From Oopsacas minuta (Eukaryota > Animalia > Porifera): a stretch of 16,465 nt of DNA. This document shows positions 3,555 to 15,593 of the stretch, one piece after another (positions within the stretch are counted from its first letter, which is position 1; each line of letters begins with the position of its first letter). A program made the position numbers and the translations under genes. The stretch lies in NCBI GenBank assembly GCA_024704765.1, contig JAKMXF010000127.1, positions 1 to 16,465 of the forward strand, in the 5' to 3' direction. The notes below the pieces were generated by a model. The model was not told the DNA's origin. It did no database searches and saw nothing but the letters and a program-made list of their open reading frames with translations.

Positions 3555-4347
3555 TTAGTTTTAGGCACACAGTAATCTTGGTTATAGTAAAGTTATTGAC
3601 AGAATCTGAACCAGATAATGGGTCAATATATACTGAGTTAACTTCTTGCTATGGATTAGAGAAGCTAGTATCAGTTAATGACAAATCCATTAAAGAAGCA
3701 TCAGTTTGTGCCATGGAGGGATGGGTAGATATTACCAAGATCGTTTGGAATAATTCTTATAATCTACGTTTCTAACCTATACCCCTCCTGATGGGGAGTA
3801 GTTACCCCTACATGTACATACCATCACCTTCAAACCTCTAAGGTTCTATACTTTACTCAATGCGACCCTCTTGATCATAGGGACTTTCGGCACTCATGGC
3901 ATGGTGTCTATTGATACTGAAGATTTTTCTATTTTACTTATCGCAACTGAGAATTTTGACCTCGCAGAATATTCTAGAATAATACTTGTCAAGCATTTAT
4001 TGTTACTTTTCACATTGATGTTACCATAGATAGTCTATGATACACCTGTTTATCAATTAAACTTCCTTAGCTTAGACGAAGGTATAGTGTGAATTATTGA
4101 AAATAGTCAAATCTCAAAATATAAGAATTATTCAGGTGGTATTCCTTGAAATTGGGTGCAAATGGCTATAATTAAATTCTTGCATCTATTGATTTCCATA
4201 CGTATGTATAAAAAGGAAGGCCTTATCCTAATTCTTGAATATTTATATCTTAGAATATGTTATATGTATCGATTAAATAGGGGGCATAATGTATACGTAT
4301 ATTACTATAGGTATTGGCCTATTCCACTGGTAACATTAATTCTAGTA

Positions 4348-4681
4348 ATGATCAGATATAGACATTTGTTCCGCAGTTTAGCTCCGGCCAAACACTCGAA
4401 TATATTTATTTCCCTACCGAGGTATTTTCACTCAGAGGATGAACAGTCTGTCTCTCAAATTGGATCTGTTCTTGACAGGACAGACACAACTCTAAAGCAG
4501 AATGGAGAGAGTATCAGAGAGATGGTGACTCGGTTAGATACTACTTTACATAGGATAAGACAAGGTGGAGGAGAAGAGGCTAAGAAGAAGCATGTAGCTA
4601 GGGGAAAGCTTCTAGCCAGAGACAGGATATCTCTTCTACTTGACCCTGGTTCTAACTTCTTGGAGCTATCTCCTTTAGCTG
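4348..4681 (+). CDS. MCCC2: Methylcrotonoyl-CoA carboxylase beta chain, mitochondrial - exon 1
   Basis: ATG at 4348. Basic, acid-free presequence MIRYRHLFRSLAPAK..., then GGGEEAKKKHVARGKLLARDRISLLLDPGSNFLELSPLAG. Donor G|GTAAGT, phase 1. Confidence 0.92.
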
Positions 4682-5331: not shown

Positions 5332-5673
5332 GCTACAAACTGTACGGGTCTGAAGAGGTACCAGCTGGAGGTATCATAACAGGAATTGGCCCCATTAACG
5401 GAAGAGAATGTATGATAGTAGCTAATGATGCTACCGTAAAAGGAGGAACGTATTACCCTATCACCGTAAAGAAACATCTACGAGCTCAAGAGATTGGCGC
5501 CCAGAATCAGCTGCCCTGTATATACCTAGTGGATTCTGGTGGAGCTAATCTACCTAGACAGGAGGACGTATTTCCAGATAGAGATCACTTTGGGAGGATA
5601 TTCTATAACCAAGCTATTATGTCTAGCATGTCTGTACCTCAGATAGCTGCTGTCATGGGTTCTTGCACTGCAG
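5332..5673 (+). CDS. MCCC2: MCCC2 exon 2
   Basis: Acceptor [25 protein letters not shown]...[25 protein letters not shown]...[28 protein letters not shown]...VMGSCTA. Ends at a GC donor, CAG|GCGAGT. Confidence 0.95.
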
Positions 5674-6165
5674 GCGAGTTATATTAGTCCCCTGAAGTTG
5701 ACTATTACTTCATCACAATTCTGAATCATAACCTTGAAGAGATTCAACATTAACAATTTGACCTGATTGGGGAATATAGATTATTCGTCAATGTGGAACA
5801 TTGAAGCAAACCATATTCCTTAGGTAATAATGTTCGAGGGGGACAATAGTCTCTAGTGATAAAGTTCGAGGAACATTATTCACGGAGAACCTGTGTTGTT
5901 TTGAGGGGTGGGCTCGTGGGGGCCCCGCCCACCTACTTTTGTTCCTGGTGACCGTTTTCACTGAGTTTTTAAAAGAGTTAACTTGAATAGGGAGCACTGC
6001 CCCTCCTCTATTTCGATTTTGGCAAACAAACTACTTCGGGGAACACTATTCATTGTTACACCGGATTCACATGGGCCAGATATTTCGGTACAGTACATTT
6101 ACTTACACTCAGTTGCTAATTCTGAGTTTAGTATTATTGATTTATATACACATCCTTACTTATAG

Positions 6166-6538
6166 GTGGTGCGTATGTACCTGCCATGGCTGATGAGAGT
6201 ATTATTGTCAAAGATAAGGGTACCATATTCCTAGCAGGTCCCCCATTGGTACGAGCTGCTACAGGGGAGGTAGTGACAGCACAGGAGCTGGGAGGAGCAG
6301 ATCTACACTGTAGAGAGTCAGGAGTTACTGACTACTTTGCAGTAGATGACAGACATGCTATATCTCTTGTCAGGAGAATTGTGTCTCGTCTCAACAAGAA
6401 GAAACCAGTTGATTTAGAAATTAAGACTCCAGAGGAACCTCTATTCTCTCAACAGGAGATGCATCAGCTAGCTTCTCCTAACGTACAGAAGCCCTTCTTG
6501 ATGTATGAAATACTGTCTAGGATAGTAGACGGTAGTAG
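6166..6538 (+). CDS. MCCC2: MCCC2 exon 3
   Basis: Acceptor TTATAG. GGAYVPAMADESIIVKDKGTIFLAGPPLVRAATGEVVTAQELGGADLHC...RIVDGS. Donor AG|GTGGGT, phase 2. Confidence 0.95.
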
Positions 6539-7700: not shown

Positions 7701-8023
7701 ATTTGATGAATTCAAATCTCTATATGGTCAGACGTTGATTACAGGATTTGCACACATCCACGGTTACCCAGTTGGTATTCTAGCTAACAACGGAGTTCTC
7801 CTGTCTGAGTCAGCTCTGAAAGGTACTCATTTCATAGAGCTCTGTTGTCAGAGAGGTATCCCGCTATTATTCGTACAAAACATTTCTGGATTTGCGGTAG
7901 GAAGAGTAGCAGAGGCTGGAGGTATTGCTAAGAACGGTGCTAAGATGGTGCATGCTGTAGCAAATGCTAAAGTGCCTAAGATCACACTGATTGTAGGAGG
8001 GAGCTTTGGTGCTGGAAACTACG
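7701..8023 (+). CDS. MCCC2: MCCC2 exon 4
   Basis: Acceptor [38 protein letters not shown]...QNISGF...[35 protein letters not shown]. Donor G|GTATGT, phase 1. Confidence 0.95.
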
Positions 8024-8350
8024 GTATGTTTGACTGTATACTTGTTATGAGTGCAGTGTTTACCCCCGTTAGGATTAATCTTTGATGCTAACTTAGCATT
8101 TGATTATTTACCTCCAATCGAATAGTTGTTACCTCAAATAGTCCATCTACCAAATATGTTACATCTGGGTGAGTAATACTGCGTATGTAGAATAGTTATA
8201 ATTACACATTCTAATTTGGCATAACACCATTGGCAAGTGGTAATTAGTATGATAACTAAAGGTCTATATTTGGTAAGCCGAATATATTTAATTCAAATAT
8301 CCCACCACTCAATTTTCAGACCAAATTTTATTCGTGAGAATTTGACAGAG

Positions 8351-8400
8351 AAATTATATAATAATAATAATTATTATTATAATAATTATTATTATATAAA
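8351..8400. repeat. Pure A/T tract of alternating (TAA)n/(TTA)n blocks
   Basis: 50 bp containing only A and T, with self-complementary TAA/TTA blocks, about 150 bp upstream of the nested PPM1G ATG. Confidence 0.7.
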
Positions 8401-8548
8401 CACTATGATATCCAATATAAACTGTATAAGATATTGCATACTATCTATATTTACTCTCATTGACTTTATTAATTAGCAAAGCTAATACAGCAATTACGTC
8501 ATCATTTTAAGAATCCTACAGAACTACACTTACTCAAGTTATATAGTT

Positions 8549-10228
8549 ATGGGAGCTTTCTTAGCCGTACCGAATACGAAGAAACATAGTTGTAGTGGAA
8601 GTGGTACTCACGAGCATATCACATACCACTACGGAGCCTCGTGTATGCAGGGATGGAGGGCTAGGATGGAGGATACATACAACTCTATACCTGCTTTAGA
8701 TAAAGACACAGGATTATTCGCTGTGTATGACGGTCATGGAGGAAAAGAAGTAGCTCTCTACTGTCAAGAGAAGCTTCCTGATAAACTTAAATCTGATCCA
8801 GCATTCTTAAGCGGTAAGATAGGAGATGCTCTACAAAATATATTCTTAGAGCTAGATGATGAGGTCAGAGGGAATCAGGCTGGATCAGAGATGAGAGAAC
8901 TATTGCGAAAAGAGGATGGCAGTATTCAAGGTAGTGACTCTAGCACAGATGAAGAATACAAACCTAGTACTGACGAGGAGTTGATGCTGAAACAGGAAGC
9001 AAACATCCCACTAGATGAGATAATCGCTCAATTCGGACCTCCTACTGACGGAGGCAGCAGGAAATCTATGTTACAAGCTCTGTTTGAGGAAGGACTTGAG
9101 GAGACCAGCTCTGATGGAAGTGAAGAGGAACTCACTCCCAGTGAAAGTGATACTGAAAGATCTGGAGAGGATTCTCCATCTCCTTCTCAAGATAAGGATG
9201 ATACGAAGTCTCCATCACAACCAAAATCTACAAATGGAATTCTCAAAAAATCAGATGATAGCTACGAAGATGTGGCGCAATCTAGCGATATATTCGCGCT
9301 AGACGCTAGCTCCAATTTAGAGGTTCCATTCATACAACCCTCCTCCCTCCCCTCTCCTATAAAATCGCCTGACAAACTGTCTCAGTCTGAATCTGATAAT
9401 CCTGAATTAGAAGAGACAGAAGCTACTCTGAAGAGGGAGCTAGAAGAATTGGACAGAACACCTCTCCTGCCTGAGACCGCTTCTAGTGACGAGGAGCTGT
9501 GTACGGAGTCTGAGGAGAAGCAGCCCCTTTATAAATTGAATCGTAAGAACAAGAGTGAGGGGTTTGACAGTGGTACAACAGCTGTGGTGTGTGTCATATA
9601 CAAAGGTGATATTATAGTAGCAAATGCTGGAGATTCTAGATGTGTACTCTCCAGGCAGGGAGAAGCGTACCCTCTCTCATTTGATCACAAACCAACAGAT
9701 ATAGAAGAGTTGAAGAGGATTGATAAAGCTGGGGGTACAGTGGGACTAGATGGGCGTGTCAATTCAGGACTTAATTTATCCCGTGCAATCGGTGATCATA
9801 TCTACAAACTGAACAAAGAACTGCCTCTACAGGAACAAATGATATCCGCACTTCCTGATATCAATAGCACTACTCTACAGTCAGGTGATAGCTTCATACT
9901 GCTAGCCTGTGATGGCATATTCAACGTAATGGATAATCAAGAAGCTATCACATTCGTACAGAACAGATTGGATAAGATAAACTTGTCAAAGGAGGGACCG
10001 TCTGCTCTCGCTCGTATTTGTGAGGAATTGTGTCAGGGTTGTTTAGCAGACGATACTAACAATGATGGATCTGGCTGTGACAATATGACAGCAATAATAG
10101 TTGTACCTGACATCAGTAGCTCCGATTCTAAACCAAACTCAAATTCAAACTCCAGCAGGAAAAGGAAATCCTCTGATAGTACAGATAGTTCTAAGAGATT
10201 GAAATCTGGCAGTATAGACTCGTGTTAA
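8549..10228 (+). CDS. PPM1G: Protein phosphatase 1G-like (PP2C-gamma), intronless, nested in MCCC2 intron 4
   Basis: 559-aa uninterrupted ORF. N-terminus MGAFLAVPNT (MG myristoylation type). PP2C motifs MQGWRARMED, DGHGG, ANAGDSR, DHKP, GRVNSGLNLSRAIGD, LACDGI, CDNMT. Long acidic/Ser-rich insert and a basic C-terminal NLS-like tail (RKRK...KRLK), both characteristic of PPM1G. Confidence 0.93.
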   Translation: MGAFLAVPNTKKHSCSGSGTHEHITYHYGASCMQGWRARMEDTYNSIPALDKDTGLFAVYDGHGGKEVALYCQEKLPDKLKSDPAFLSGKIGDALQNIFLELDDEVRGNQAGSEMRELLRKEDGSIQGSDSSTDEEYKPSTDEELMLKQEANIPLDEIIAQFGPPTDGGSRKSMLQALFEEGLEETSSDGSEEELTPSESDTERSGEDSPSPSQDKDDTKSPSQPKSTNGILKKSDDSYEDVAQSSDIFALDASSNLEVPFIQPSSLPSPIKSPDKLSQSESDNPELEETEATLKRELEELDRTPLLPETASSDEELCTESEEKQPLYKLNRKNKSEGFDSGTTAVVCVIYKGDIIVANAGDSRCVLSRQGEAYPLSFDHKPTDIEELKRIDKAGGTVGLDGRVNSGLNLSRAIGDHIYKLNKELPLQEQMISALPDINSTTLQSGDSFILLACDGIFNVMDNQEAITFVQNRLDKINLSKEGPSALARICEELCQGCLADDTNNDGSGCDNMTAIIVVPDISSSDSKPNSNSNSSRKRKSSDSTDSSKRLKSGSIDSC

Positions 10229-10575
10229 TTAAACGAATAGCTTATTATCACTAATCACGTTTATATAATGCTTTAGTGCTGTAGCCTCTGCTCTCTCTAT
10301 TTGCTACTTATTTTTAAAGAATTCATCCCTTACATTCAATATGCCACTTTGTGTAGACTTTATAATGAATCAGCTGTTCATGTGCTTTCTGTATGTAGAT
10401 TGTTGCACACTTATTACTATGCACTTTGAAATACACTCTTTCATACATTATTATAATTATTTTCTGCCCCAAATTACGATACAAAAGTTATAATTTCGCT
10501 TCGTGAATCGCGGAACTCTAACAATAATTATTTCGCTTGTACTACTACCAAATCAGTTATCCATTATTTGTGTAG

Positions 10576-10916
10576 GAATGTGTGGGCGTGCCTACTCCCC
10601 TCGCTTCCTGTTCATGTGGCCTAATGCACGGATATCTGTAATGGGAGGAGAACAGGCTGCAGGGGTACTCGCTCAGATAAAAGCTGTTGCAGCTCGTAAG
10701 CAGGGAAAAGAATGGACTCCTGAACAAGAGACAGCTTTTAAAGCTCCAATAATTAAAGCATTTGACGAGCAAAGCTCTGCTTACTACAGCAGTGCTAGAC
10801 TATGGGATGATGGTGTTATTGATCCTACAGATACTAGACATGTGTTAGCTCTCAGTCTTAGTGCTGCATTAAACGCACCCATAGAGGACACACAGTTCGG
10901 AGTGTTCCGGATGTGA
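10576..10916 (+). CDS. MCCC2: MCCC2 exon 5 (terminal)
   Basis: Acceptor GTGTAG. (G)[28 protein letters not shown]...[13 protein letters not shown]...FGVFRM-stop. The five exons sum to 1713 nt (570 aa plus stop), frame-consistent. Confidence 0.95.
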
Positions 10917-11503
10917 AGTGGGAATGATTAGGCATTTCTTGTTCGATTCTCTTACATTACACTTAGTTATGAATATGTATTGTATTATAGTATAGATATT
11001 GTAGGGTATCAGAGAATTTAGTATGTACGCGTACACACGAGAAACTACCTCTACCTCTACCTCTTGGTTGTTGGTTTGGATCGGGTTTGGAAAAGATGTA
11101 TACCTGTTGCATGGGATTCTGATCGGACTCATTAAGTCTATCAGTCAGATAATTTGTTCGAAATTGTCTAAAAGGAAAATGTAGTCCTGTACTGATGTAC
11201 CATATTGCATTTTAATCGGACTCCTGATAATGGCCATGTCGGGACTGCTAGATTTTGTGCGGTCTCATCGATAGAAGTCATTTTCGGTTAAGAAGAACAA
11301 ATACGTATGTACACAAAATCGGGTCTCTACAATGCTTATTCAATTGTTATTACTCCGGTTAAGGCGAAAATATTTGACCGCCGGGCAGGTTCCTATTCAC
11401 GACTGTTCTCTTCCAAAGGAATCTTTGAATTTTGTATGAATAATTTATGAAGGTGTATATATGAGTCGATATATAGGATCTGCTGTGAGGTTAATTCTAA
11501 ATA

Positions 11504-12096
11504 ATGTCAGAGGAAGATTCACCAGATTTGAATATACCTGGAGAAGATGATGCAATAAGACGAGTTGATAACTCCGTTGCTGGTGATAATGAATCAGATT
11601 TTGAATCTGAATATTCTCTAGGACACCAAGAAGAAATAGGCAAGAGAGTAGAAGATATGTTCACTCTTCGTCTTTTGGATGAATTGGGGAGTAACTTTTC
11701 AGAATCTACACCTTCCCCAAGAGTAGATGATGGGGAAAGATTGTTTGGCGGTCACATGAGTCTGTTACAGTTTATCAACACAATATCATCTCTCCTACAG
11801 ACTCAGGAGTTCTCGTCACAACTGAGAATTCTATTCCAGAAGTTAGACACACGAGGGACTGGGTTTCTCTCCTGGAGTAAGCTATGCTCCTACTTGCTGA
11901 CCTACTTGAGAGAGAAGACTCAGGCAGAGAGGAGAGAGAGACATGTGCTACAAGATAAACCCAAATTCTCCAGAAGTCCCTACAGCAGATCTGTTACTGT
12001 ATTGCTTGTCTATTTGGAATCAATCAAGAAATATCTGCTCGTCAGTAAGGATGGAGTTATTAGTCTATGGACACGAGATCTGACACCTATCTCTAG
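11504..12096 (+). CDS. EF-hand-like + WD40 protein (WDR49/WDR64/EFCAB8/WDY-like) - exon 1
   Basis: ATG at 11504. Acidic N-terminus, then LFQKLDTRGTGFLSWSKLCSYL (EF-hand-like) and YLLVSKDGVISLW (WD-like). Donor AG|GTAGAT, phase 2. Confidence 0.8.
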
Positions 12097-12433
12097 GTAG
12101 ATATACATTATTATTCACTACTCTTGTTACAACTATATACGTATATAGACGTTGTGTACAAGCCTCCACGTATGTTTTAAGATTTGGTAAAAATATGCGT
12201 TATAATGAATTCAAGAGTGGCAAATAAGATTCAACTTATTCGATATACTTAACTTGTCAGGATTTATTGAATTTTATTCACTTTCTTGATAAACAAAATA
12301 AATACATATTCCTCATCTGGAAATTGCGAAATTCGAATTCAAATAGATGCCATGAATAATTTCCTTAAATAGACAGACAGACAGACATAACTTGAGATAT
12401 AATAATATAGATTTATTTTGAGTATATATTTAG

Positions 12434-12854
12434 TTACAAACTTCAATCTCTCCTACCTGGTCCTATCAAGCTCAAAGGAGCTCCTTCTTACAAACCTAAA
12501 GCTAAGGTGTGGGTAACAAGTGCTGTATTCTTCCCTGAGTTAAATAAATTAATACTCTCTACAACATCTTCTGATATCTACTTCATCTCTTTCCTTCCCC
12601 CTGACTCCTTCTTGGCTCAGTACCAACTCACTGAATTACCTAGTCCTGCCTTCTCTCTAGCTTCTCACGAGCAGTCTAGCTTGTTAATGCTGTTATGTGG
12701 ATGTGCTGATGGCTCTCTACTCGCATTGAGGTTCCTCTCACCCGAACAGGGATTATTCTCACAAGAACATACTTCTAAGCGTGATGAGTGTGTTAAGGTG
12801 TCTGGTAGGAATCTACATAGATATCAGCAGTTTGTAGTTGCTGCTACTTATCCG
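12434..12854 (+). CDS. WD40 protein exon 2
   Basis: Acceptor ATTTAG in the matching phase. KVWVTSAVFFPELNKLILSTTSSDIYF...LLCGCADGSL. Donor CCG|GTAATT, phase 0. Confidence 0.8.
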
Positions 12855-13188
12855 GTAATTACTCATTACGTTACTTATTAGTTGTTAATTTGACAAGGTT
12901 TGGCAAATATTGAATATTGAAAATTACTCGTGCACTAAGTTATCATAAAATACTGAAAAGATTGACAATTCTGATAAATGTGAAACCATAAATGCTATTA
13001 CATAACTACAGTGGGACTTGCATAATTCGATTCGCTAATCAGACAAGTATTTTCATATCAGATTATGTAGGTTTCACTTTATACACGCTGCAACAAAGTT
13101 ACATCGTGTATGTTGAATGAAAATTTAATTTTTTTGCAACATTGTTGAACCATGTATGTTGCTTTGTTGCATGTAATCTCATCAACAG

Positions 13189-13727
13189 ATCCACAACCAG
13201 TGGGTGAGAAGAATAGAATACCTCCCTTCCTTCCAGAGTGCAATCACCTGCTCACATTGTACGAAGGTATCTCTAGCTATTACAGACCTCCAGAGGATCA
13301 AGCAACCCTATCTCTTCTCTCTCCCTAAAGGAATATCTTGTTTCTGCTACTGTAATCAACTCACCCTACTCCTTACAGGATCAGTTGACCGTATAGTCCG
13401 TGTCTGGTGTCCTTACGTCCCATTCAAACCTACTGCTCTACTCATGGGCCATGAAGCATTTATAACAGATGTTATGGTGTATTATCCTAAGGGAGTATTC
13501 TTATCATTAGATACCGGGGGTATGGTTCGTATATGGGACGCTATCTGGAATAATTGTATACAGTTCGTACAGCTTGTATTCCCGCTACCTTCTCAATCCT
13601 GGGAGTTTGGACCTCGTTCCTTCTTCACTGGAGAAGTGAGCAGCTCCCTCCACTCTACCTGTGCTAACCATCTGGCTAGCTTCGGACTAGCTCCAGGTAC
13701 AGGTGAATCAGAATTCCAAGGAATCAG
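13189..13727 (+). CDS. WD40 protein exon 3
   Basis: Acceptor CAACAG. IHNQWVRRIEYLP...LLTGSVDRIVRVWCPY...LMGHEAFITDV...SLDTGGMVRIWD. The 3' boundary (AG|GTGTTA, phase 2) is inferred from frame compatibility with exon 4. Confidence 0.8.
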
Positions 13728-13751
13728 GTGTTAAATAATTACACTATAGAA

Positions 13752-14072
13752 CAGTGGCGGCGGACCGAGGAGAGCGAACGTGCGATCGCATCCCCCCCCC
13801 AAAAAAATTAACTCAACAAATACCCAAAGTTTTGATGGTACAATTATTCTAAGGGTGGAAGCAGACGTACAATTTCATAATCTGTAGCAGTAGAAATATC
13901 CTACATTTCCCAATTACGAGGGATTACTCTTTGTAATACCTCATCCCCAAACTTTGAATATGGGTTTACGCTTATTCTAGCACATATAAGTGTCAGTAAA
14001 ACTCTTTGATTCCTGTGTATTGACAGCCACTTTGACCGTCCTCCTCAGAAGAAATTCCTACCGCCGTCACTG
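13752..14072. mobile_element. Non-autonomous hAT-like element, 321 bp
   Basis: TIRs CAGTGGCGGCGG / CCGCCGTCACTG (11/12). 8-bp TSD CTATAGAA / GTATAGAA (7/8). Confidence 0.75.
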
Positions 14073-14375
14073 GTATAGAATGAAGTGTATTTTAATACAG
14101 TAGTTAATTTAGGCCACTCCAATTTAATAGATAGTTTCCCTTACAGAGGAATCCAAATATCATGCAGGCGGGCGGTTCATTTATTCAATATTCTACATTT
14201 AGAATTTGAATATTTTCGAATGGAAAGTTATAGAAACACTGTCGAATAATGAATAAAATGATGAAGAAATCAATGCAGGCTCCAAAATACATGCGGGTGG
14301 ATGATGGGAAACAATGTATTGAATTGGAGTTGCCTTACTGATATTTACCGTCCTATTTATACTTGTTCCTTCTAG

Positions 14376-14751
14376 AGGGTGTTCTCTTAAAGCTCCCCCT
14401 TGTGCAGCATTATACGCCTCTACATTCAGTTTGGTAATAGTGGGATCAGAAGACTCCACAATATTCACGTATGACATATATACCGGTAGGAGATTGTATG
14501 TGATTCCATCAGCACATGCAAGAGAGGAAATAACTGCCATGTGTATTGACCAATCCGGGAGGAGAGTAATCACTGCGTCACGCATTGGACAAGCTAAAGG
14601 TTGGGACGTTAATACAGGCGAATTAATGCAAACATTTGTAGCAGTCTCTCCCACTGAAACTACTGCTCTTCTGCCTCTAGCTAAGAAGAATCTATTGTTT
14701 TCAGCTGGTTGGTCTAAAGAGATTATTGCTTATAAAGATAGGCCTGAAAAG
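14376..14751 (+). CDS. WD40 protein exon 4 (gene continues beyond window)
   Basis: Acceptor CTTCTAG. CAALYASTFSLVIVGSEDSTIFTYDIYTG...AHAREEITAMCIDQSGRRVITAS...GWDVNTG...SAGWSKEI. Donor AAG|GTGAGT, phase 0. No stop codon reached. Confidence 0.82.
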
Positions 14752-15593
14752 GTGAGTTTATTGCTAATTATTTTAATTATATAATCCATACTTACTTATC
14801 CAAATGGTATAAACTCTATAGTGTTAGCTTGGGGGTTGCTGGTCCCCCAGGGAAATTGTCAGGAACCTGTGTGGAAACCCACTGGCACATCCCTGCATCC
14901 CAAAAGCAACCCCAAAGAGGATATGCTAGCTGCTCCTTTAGTTGTTAAGTGTTTTATTCTAAACGAGCCGCTTCGCTTGCTCGCACTGAGCACTTTGTGT
15001 TTGCAAAAGTCTAAAATTGCAAAATATTTGTTTTTGTACAAAAGAGAAACTTAAATATGCAAATTCGGATTTAGCATCCATTGTTATCAAAGAAGAATTC
15101 TCTAAGTATCTTTCGAGATTTCAATTATTTGTTTGCTTTATATTCATAAAAATTGCAAATAAATTTACATTTAATTAAATCGGAATTGAACATACTCGAT
15201 TACCCAAAATGTAATTGTTTAATTTCCTATATCATCACCAGAAGGCTATGTTATTCCCTATATTATACACACATATCATCTCGCCCTATCAATATGATAC
15301 AAAATGGACAAACAAACAAGCAAATACTATAAATATTGAAGCAACTTGAATTTTTCATTTTGAAAATGGTGATTGTATCTACTTACGTATTCGAATGAAC
15401 CCCCTATCAAAATGTTGTTAACTATAACTTGTATATATATTTGATCCCAAAGAGTATGTGGAGAGGAAAGATGGATCACTCTGTTGAATACGTCACAATC
15501 TCGCATTCTCAATGAATATATTATTCCAACATCGTCTTATGACCACAATGATTACTTTTTGAACATGAAAATTGTAATCATAAATCCATAATG

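Follow-up and report, generated by a model that had tools for sequence, protein, structure and literature searches.

The last coding intron of MCCC2, the gene for the beta subunit of 3-methylcrotonyl-CoA carboxylase, contains, in the glass sponge Oopsacas minuta, a complete and intronless gene for a PPM1G-type protein phosphatase, located on the same strand as its host. The same layout is found in six related lineages, the phosphatase frame is maintained by selection, neither gene has a second copy in the genome, and a transcript of the phosphatase is available from a relative. The nest is real, old, conserved and functional; the guest would probably be expressed autonomously, and the host transcript would be spliced across it.

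Organization of the host gene

The window, i.e. the whole stretch of DNA analyzed, corresponds to the entire 16,465-base contig C127. A five-exon MCCC2 gene is found on its plus strand, organized as follows.

4348..4681, plus strand: MCCC2 coding exon 1; starts MIRYRHLFRSL..., donor GTAAGT; start codon and donor position are kept in relatives
5332..5673, plus strand: MCCC2 exon 2; Pfam Carboxyl_trans match; the next intron has a GC donor, GCGAGT, at 5674
6166..6538, plus strand: MCCC2 exon 3; Pfam Carboxyl_trans match
7701..8023, plus strand: MCCC2 exon 4; Pfam Carboxyl_trans match; ends ...GGSFGAGNY plus G (phase 1)
8024..10575, plus strand: MCCC2 intron 4, the last coding intron; GT...AG, 2552 nt, contains the guest gene
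10576..10916, plus strand: MCCC2 exon 5; Pfam Carboxyl_trans match; ends FRM, stop TGA

The exons were searched singly, their boundaries were read from the sequence, and the continuity of the frame was evaluated by length arithmetic: the five exons total 1713 nt, which makes an open frame of 570 codons and a stop. The matches of exons 2 to 5 to the Pfam profile cover successive parts of it. The end of exon 4 reads ...GGAAACTACG/GTATGT at 8023/8024, with the donor GT at 8024; exon 5 starts as ...TTTGTGTAG/GAATGTGTGGGCGT at 10575/10576, with the acceptor AG at 10574-10575 and GA ATG TGT GGG CGT as opening codons. The resulting join reads GAGNY-G-MCGRAY, a single Gly codon being split g/ga after its first base (phase 1). 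These two boundaries had been placed in the first-pass annotation exactly to the base, and its numbering of the intron as the fourth is correct, when coding exons are counted. The mean intron length in the O. minuta genome is 341 bp (PMC10280926).

Six related lineages, indicated as L008, L009, L010, L011, L015 and L016, were compared, which together with the window make seven. All four MCCC2 intron positions are common to the relatives. The GC donor of intron 2 (window 5674-5679, CAG/GCGAGT) is also present in the Vazella-like loci L008 and L011; L009, L015 and L016 feature a GT at this position, and the sequence of L010 stops short of the site. Downstream of MCCC2, on the same strand, the window contains a multi-exon gene (11504-14784) with an EF-hand-like N-terminus and WD40 repeats, which also follows MCCC2 in L010 and L015, and is more distant in L011.

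Copy number was assessed on the whole genome (G000; 61,460,524 bases in 365 contigs), where MCCC2 is single-copy. The two other carboxyltransferase matches found there, G000:C210:516821-517105 and G000:C222:1652765-1653085, show identities of 51% and 39%, respectively, with exon 4 of MCCC2; both belong to uninterrupted frames, of 538 and 543 aa, so that these paralogues appear to be intronless.

The guest gene

Intron 4 contains a sole long open frame.

8549..10228, plus strand: guest gene, PPM1G-type PP2C, single exon, 559 aa

The encoded protein matches Pfam PP2C (PF00481) at E 7e-70 and, by comparison with solved PP2C structures, features intact RxxMED, DGHGG, DSGTTAV, GDSR, DHKP, LSRAIGD, ACDG and GCDNMT motifs; four of them (RxxMED, DGHGG, ACDG, GCDNMT) are invariant across the seven species. 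Alignment to 2I0O and to PPM1A is obtained in two stretches, residues 1-118 and 336-518, separated by a 217 aa insert (residues 119-335), which is acidic and Ser-rich (25% Asp+Glu, 22% Ser+Thr). This acidic insert, which splits the catalytic domain, is the hallmark of PPM1G. The protein starts with MGAF (Met-Gly-Ala-Phe) and ends with a basic tail, RKRK...KRLK. All named matches among its top 120 are called PPM1G or protein phosphatase 1G in at least one source: judging by best matches, the guest belongs to the PPM1G (PP2C-gamma) subfamily, rather than to other PP2C paralogues. The reading of the locus given in the first-pass annotation, an intact, intronless, PPM1G-type coding sequence on the strand of the host and wholly within an MCCC2 intron, is therefore borne out by coordinates and motifs.

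A search of the genome for further copies, proposed in the same annotation along with a comparison of MCCC2 introns in relatives and a dN/dS estimate, returned only one PPM1G; the next-best PP2C is 50% identical and does not contain the insert. P0001, the model publicly available for the guest in O. minuta, is 414 aa long and starts at the internal Met146, omitting residues 1-145 (window 8549-8983); the N-terminal catalytic half, including RxxMED and DGHGG, is therefore missing from it. The true guest product is 559 aa, not 414, and the locus corrects the public gene model in this respect.

Conservation, selection and age of the nest

The nearest homologues of the guest, P0002 to P0008, share with it 49-70% identity and are found on eukaryotic contigs of ENA and Logan metagenome assemblies. 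In each of the six related lineages the phosphatase frame lies on the same strand, between the GGSFGAGNY and MCGRAY exons of MCCC2, and the intron bearing it is flanked by a phase-1 G/GT donor and a TAG/G acceptor: intron and phase are the same throughout. The guest frames are complete in all seven species, at 558-601 aa, once the MGAF start is used, and the insert is conserved as well.

The Vazella lineage is represented by four independent assemblies (L011 to L014), all with this layout. A Trinity-derived protein of Vazella pourtalesii, P0126 from EukProt, is collinear with the genomic frame of L011 and identical to it at 557 of 558 positions, which identifies L011-L014 as V. pourtalesii or a very close relative. 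It also provides direct evidence for transcription of the guest orthologue in Vazella, and for the lack of splicing within its coding sequence.

Four pairs of guest sequences have dS < 1, and give dN/dS values of 0.15-0.19; all comparisons of the window with a relative give dS > 2 or no calculable value, as synonymous sites are saturated. On the pairs that can be measured, the guest is under purifying selection.

These results bear directly on the possibility, considered in the first-pass annotation, that the nest derives from an assembly error or is a recent processed copy. Misassembly, a recent processed retrocopy or a pseudogene might be suggested by the lack of introns in the coding sequence and by the limited length of the contig (16.5 kb). 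The layout, however, is common to seven species and to four assemblies of one of them, a parent copy is absent, low dN/dS is found along with saturated dS, and a full-length transcript exists in a relative: this explanation is considered refuted.

The PPM1G-like gene of a demosponge, Halichondria panicea (P0121), features about 10 coding exons, spread over 13.6 kb, versus the single exon found in seven glass sponges, and no MCCC2 sequence is present within 10 kb of it. Since this gene is multi-exon and located elsewhere, the move of PPM1G into MCCC2, along with the loss of all its coding introns, occurred on the glass-sponge side, between the divergence from demosponges and the separation of the seven lineages sampled. 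Of the six related loci, five derive from metagenome contigs, and the depth of the clade is judged from sequence divergence only. The Halichondria PPM1G-like gene (L017:12293-18023, minus strand) is itself a host: a ZU5-domain gene, in antisense orientation, is annotated inside it.

The locus thus provides a clean and datable same-strand nest of two single-copy housekeeping genes, which has outlasted the saturation of synonymous sites.

Non-coding signals around the guest

In comparisons between species, parts of the guest flanks can be aligned, in contrast to the other MCCC2 introns, for which no alignment is obtained. Three candidate elements are described.

8470..8478, plus strand: TAATTAGCA motif, 71-79 nt upstream of the guest ATG; candidate promoter-proximal element
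8544..8546, plus strand: TAG, two bases upstream of the guest ATG; may act as a 3' splice acceptor, for a spliced leader or a 5'UTR intron
10300..10383, plus strand: conserved non-coding block of about 84 nt in the guest 3' flank, 64-68% identical to five relatives

Identity in the 3' block exceeds that of four-fold degenerate sites of the same gene, which is 37-42%. No conserved fold is predicted for the block, no other copy of it is found in the genome, and an Rfam search of intron 4 revealed no known RNA family at E up to 1. The block probably corresponds to the guest 3'UTR or to signals for 3' end formation. The hexamer ATGAAT was also considered as a general poly(A) signal, and dropped, since its conservation downstream of the guest is not matched downstream of MCCC2.

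Upstream of the guest, ATTAGC or ATTAGA is found at -44 to -77 from the ATG in six of the seven species. An ATTAG(G)C motif (window 10925-10935) is also located 6-14 nt after the MCCC2 stop codon, again in 6 species out of 7. The intron upstream of the guest includes, at window 8354-8399, an AT-rich simple repeat (ATAATAATAATTATTATT...), which is self-complementary and resembles a repeat of contig C66. No repeat or transposon origin could be assigned to the guest flanks: the upstream one matches the AT-rich simple repeat only, and the 3' block is unique.

The TAG preceding the guest ATG is at -2 in five of the seven species; it is found at -1 in L010 and at both -9 and -13 in L009, so that a YAG lies just upstream of the ATG (1-13 nt) in every species. 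When scored by a weight matrix derived from 26 true MCCC2 cis-acceptors, these start-proximal AGs fall between the 30th and the 97th percentile of background AGs. A trans-spliced leader has been reported in the glass sponge Aphrocallistes (PMC10282587), and the guest TAG could therefore be a leader acceptor. The host start was examined for comparison (window 4325-4347): its ATG is preceded by an invariant YAG-TA-ATG in all six species reaching the site (the window, L008, L009, L011, L015, L016), and a CTAAC-like (or CTTAC) motif, resembling a branch point, is located 11-18 nt upstream of this AG. On these features the host YAG, which ends two bases ahead of the ATG, convincingly looks like a 3' splice site, as acceptor either for a spliced leader or for a 5'UTR intron. 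The case for an acceptor is weaker for the guest than for the host.

Expression of host and guest

In the proposed scheme, the guest is its own transcription unit, whose start signals would lie within about 250 nt, or less, upstream of the ATG, since in Vazella only 247 nt separate the host donor from the guest ATG, leaving no more room. The 5' end of its mRNA would probably be spliced, possibly to a spliced leader, at the TAG just upstream of the ATG, and its 3' end would be generated within the conserved block, approximately 70-155 nt past the stop. Ordinary cis-splicing of the host transcript, joining 8023 to 10576, would give full-length MCCC2 and discard the whole guest as intron; such splicing is proposed because exon 5 is conserved and single-copy. 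The metagenome collection contained no exact exon 4-exon 5 junction, and no RNA-derived match was found to the exact guest products of 559 aa and 527 aa (from Met33), or to N-terminal fragments. Sharing a template would need no special mechanism, and the same would hold for hundreds to thousands of other nested genes of glass sponges.

The main rival to this scheme is an operon embedded in the intron. The guest would have no promoter, and its mRNA would be released from the MCCC2 pre-mRNA through trans-splicing of a leader at the TAG, together with intronic cleavage and polyadenylation, each primary transcript yielding either MCCC2 or PPM1G. Such an arrangement would be compatible with the common strand, with the 247 nt available in Vazella, with the constant presence of a TAG or YAG 1-13 nt before the guest ATG and with the leader described in a glass sponge (PMC10282587); in addition, the branch-point motif and YAG conserved before the host ATG imply that start-proximal acceptors exist at this locus. 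The candidate acceptor of the guest, however, is indistinguishable from background AGs, and the motif that six of the seven species share at -44 to -77 from the ATG suggests local control: an intronic operon is therefore regarded as rather unlikely. If it were true, one promoter would feed two unrelated housekeeping genes, with a binary choice for each transcript, and an operon inside an intron would have persisted while the sampled glass-sponge lineages diverged.

The TAG might also be used in cis, as the acceptor of an alternative last exon: joining MCCC2 exon 4 to position 8546 would generate a truncated MCCC2-PPM1G fusion, and the phase-1 donor, together with the two bases between TAG and ATG, would keep it in frame in the window, L008, L011, L015 and L016. 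The frame is lost, though, in L010 and at both TAGs of L009 (-13, -9), where only a weak AAG at -5 is in frame; three lineages in frame versus two out is about what chance would give. Moreover, the protein encoded by the Vazella transcript begins with MGAF and is 558 aa long, with no fusion. In a fused product, the sole MCCC2 gene would also lose its conserved C-terminus (113 residues), and the conserved Met-Gly start of the guest would become internal. Such a fusion is very improbable, and independent transcription of the guest, with splicing of the host across it, is the preferred interpretation.

Origin of the intronless guest

Retroposition, followed by the loss of the original PPM1G copy, is the likeliest origin of the guest, and is preferred because a single event covers both the relocation and the loss of about nine introns. 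No second PPM1G, which might represent the parent copy, is found in the genome of the window, and the guest flanks contain no poly(A) remnant, conserved A-tract, target-site duplication or flanking direct repeat. At the age of the guest, such marks would be erased, and an orphaned retrogene is therefore possible. Alternatively, introns may have been lost stepwise, or as part of a genome-wide process, the gene having moved at the DNA level. Introns are scarce in this genome as a whole: 9872 of 16,340 models are single-exon (PMC10282587), and introns average 1.59 per gene (PMC10280926). Since about 60% of the O. minuta gene models have a single exon (PMC10282587, table 1), an intronless gene is not special here.

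Comparison with known systems

PPM1G (PP2C-gamma) proteins of other animals, whose best solved relative is the Ser/Thr phosphatase 2I0O, share with the guest the PP2C fold with a long acidic insert, the Met-Gly start and the basic C-terminal tail. The guest differs from them in being a single exon within MCCC2; vertebrate PPM1G is multi-exon and is not known to be linked to MCCC2.

The premise of the first-pass annotation, that most nested genes are antiparallel to their hosts, turns out to be overstated, as the two orientations have been described as 'broadly similar' in both mouse and human (PMC11694760). The same annotation also maintained that a shared strand forces host splicing to compete with initiation or termination of the guest; such competition may reasonably be inferred, and is the kind of interplay seen at mouse H13/Mcts2, where transcription of the guest drives premature intronic polyadenylation of the host (PMC13309782). 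Like PPM1G in MCCC2, Mcts2 is an intronless guest, probably retroposed, inside a host intron. Mcts2, however, is a young duplicate, with a parent elsewhere, and is controlled by imprinting and DNA methylation, whereas the guest described here is the ancient, sole copy of an essential-type gene; of the two pairs, host-guest interplay is known only for H13/Mcts2. Operons resolved by spliced leaders, found in nematodes and tunicates, are similar in having genes on the same strand and an acceptor close to the downstream ATG. In those operons the downstream gene sits after the upstream one, whereas here it lies inside its intron, and co-transcription is hypothetical.

The closest comparison is with glass sponges themselves, where nested genes are a published hallmark of the genomes: 2432 genes (12.4%) are nested in Aphrocallistes vastus, many of them conserved (PMC10282587). 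The PPM1G-MCCC2 pair was not found named in that paper, which contains no strand statistics. The features described there are the same as in the present case, namely a single-exon gene wholly contained in the intron of an unrelated host, a layout conserved between glass sponges, and a compact genome of mostly one-exon genes. The nest is thus a further example of a known glass-sponge arrangement, rather than a new kind of system; its conserved flanks make the locus convenient for asking, from available glass-sponge RNA data, how same-strand guests start and end within host introns, and whether the spliced leader is involved.
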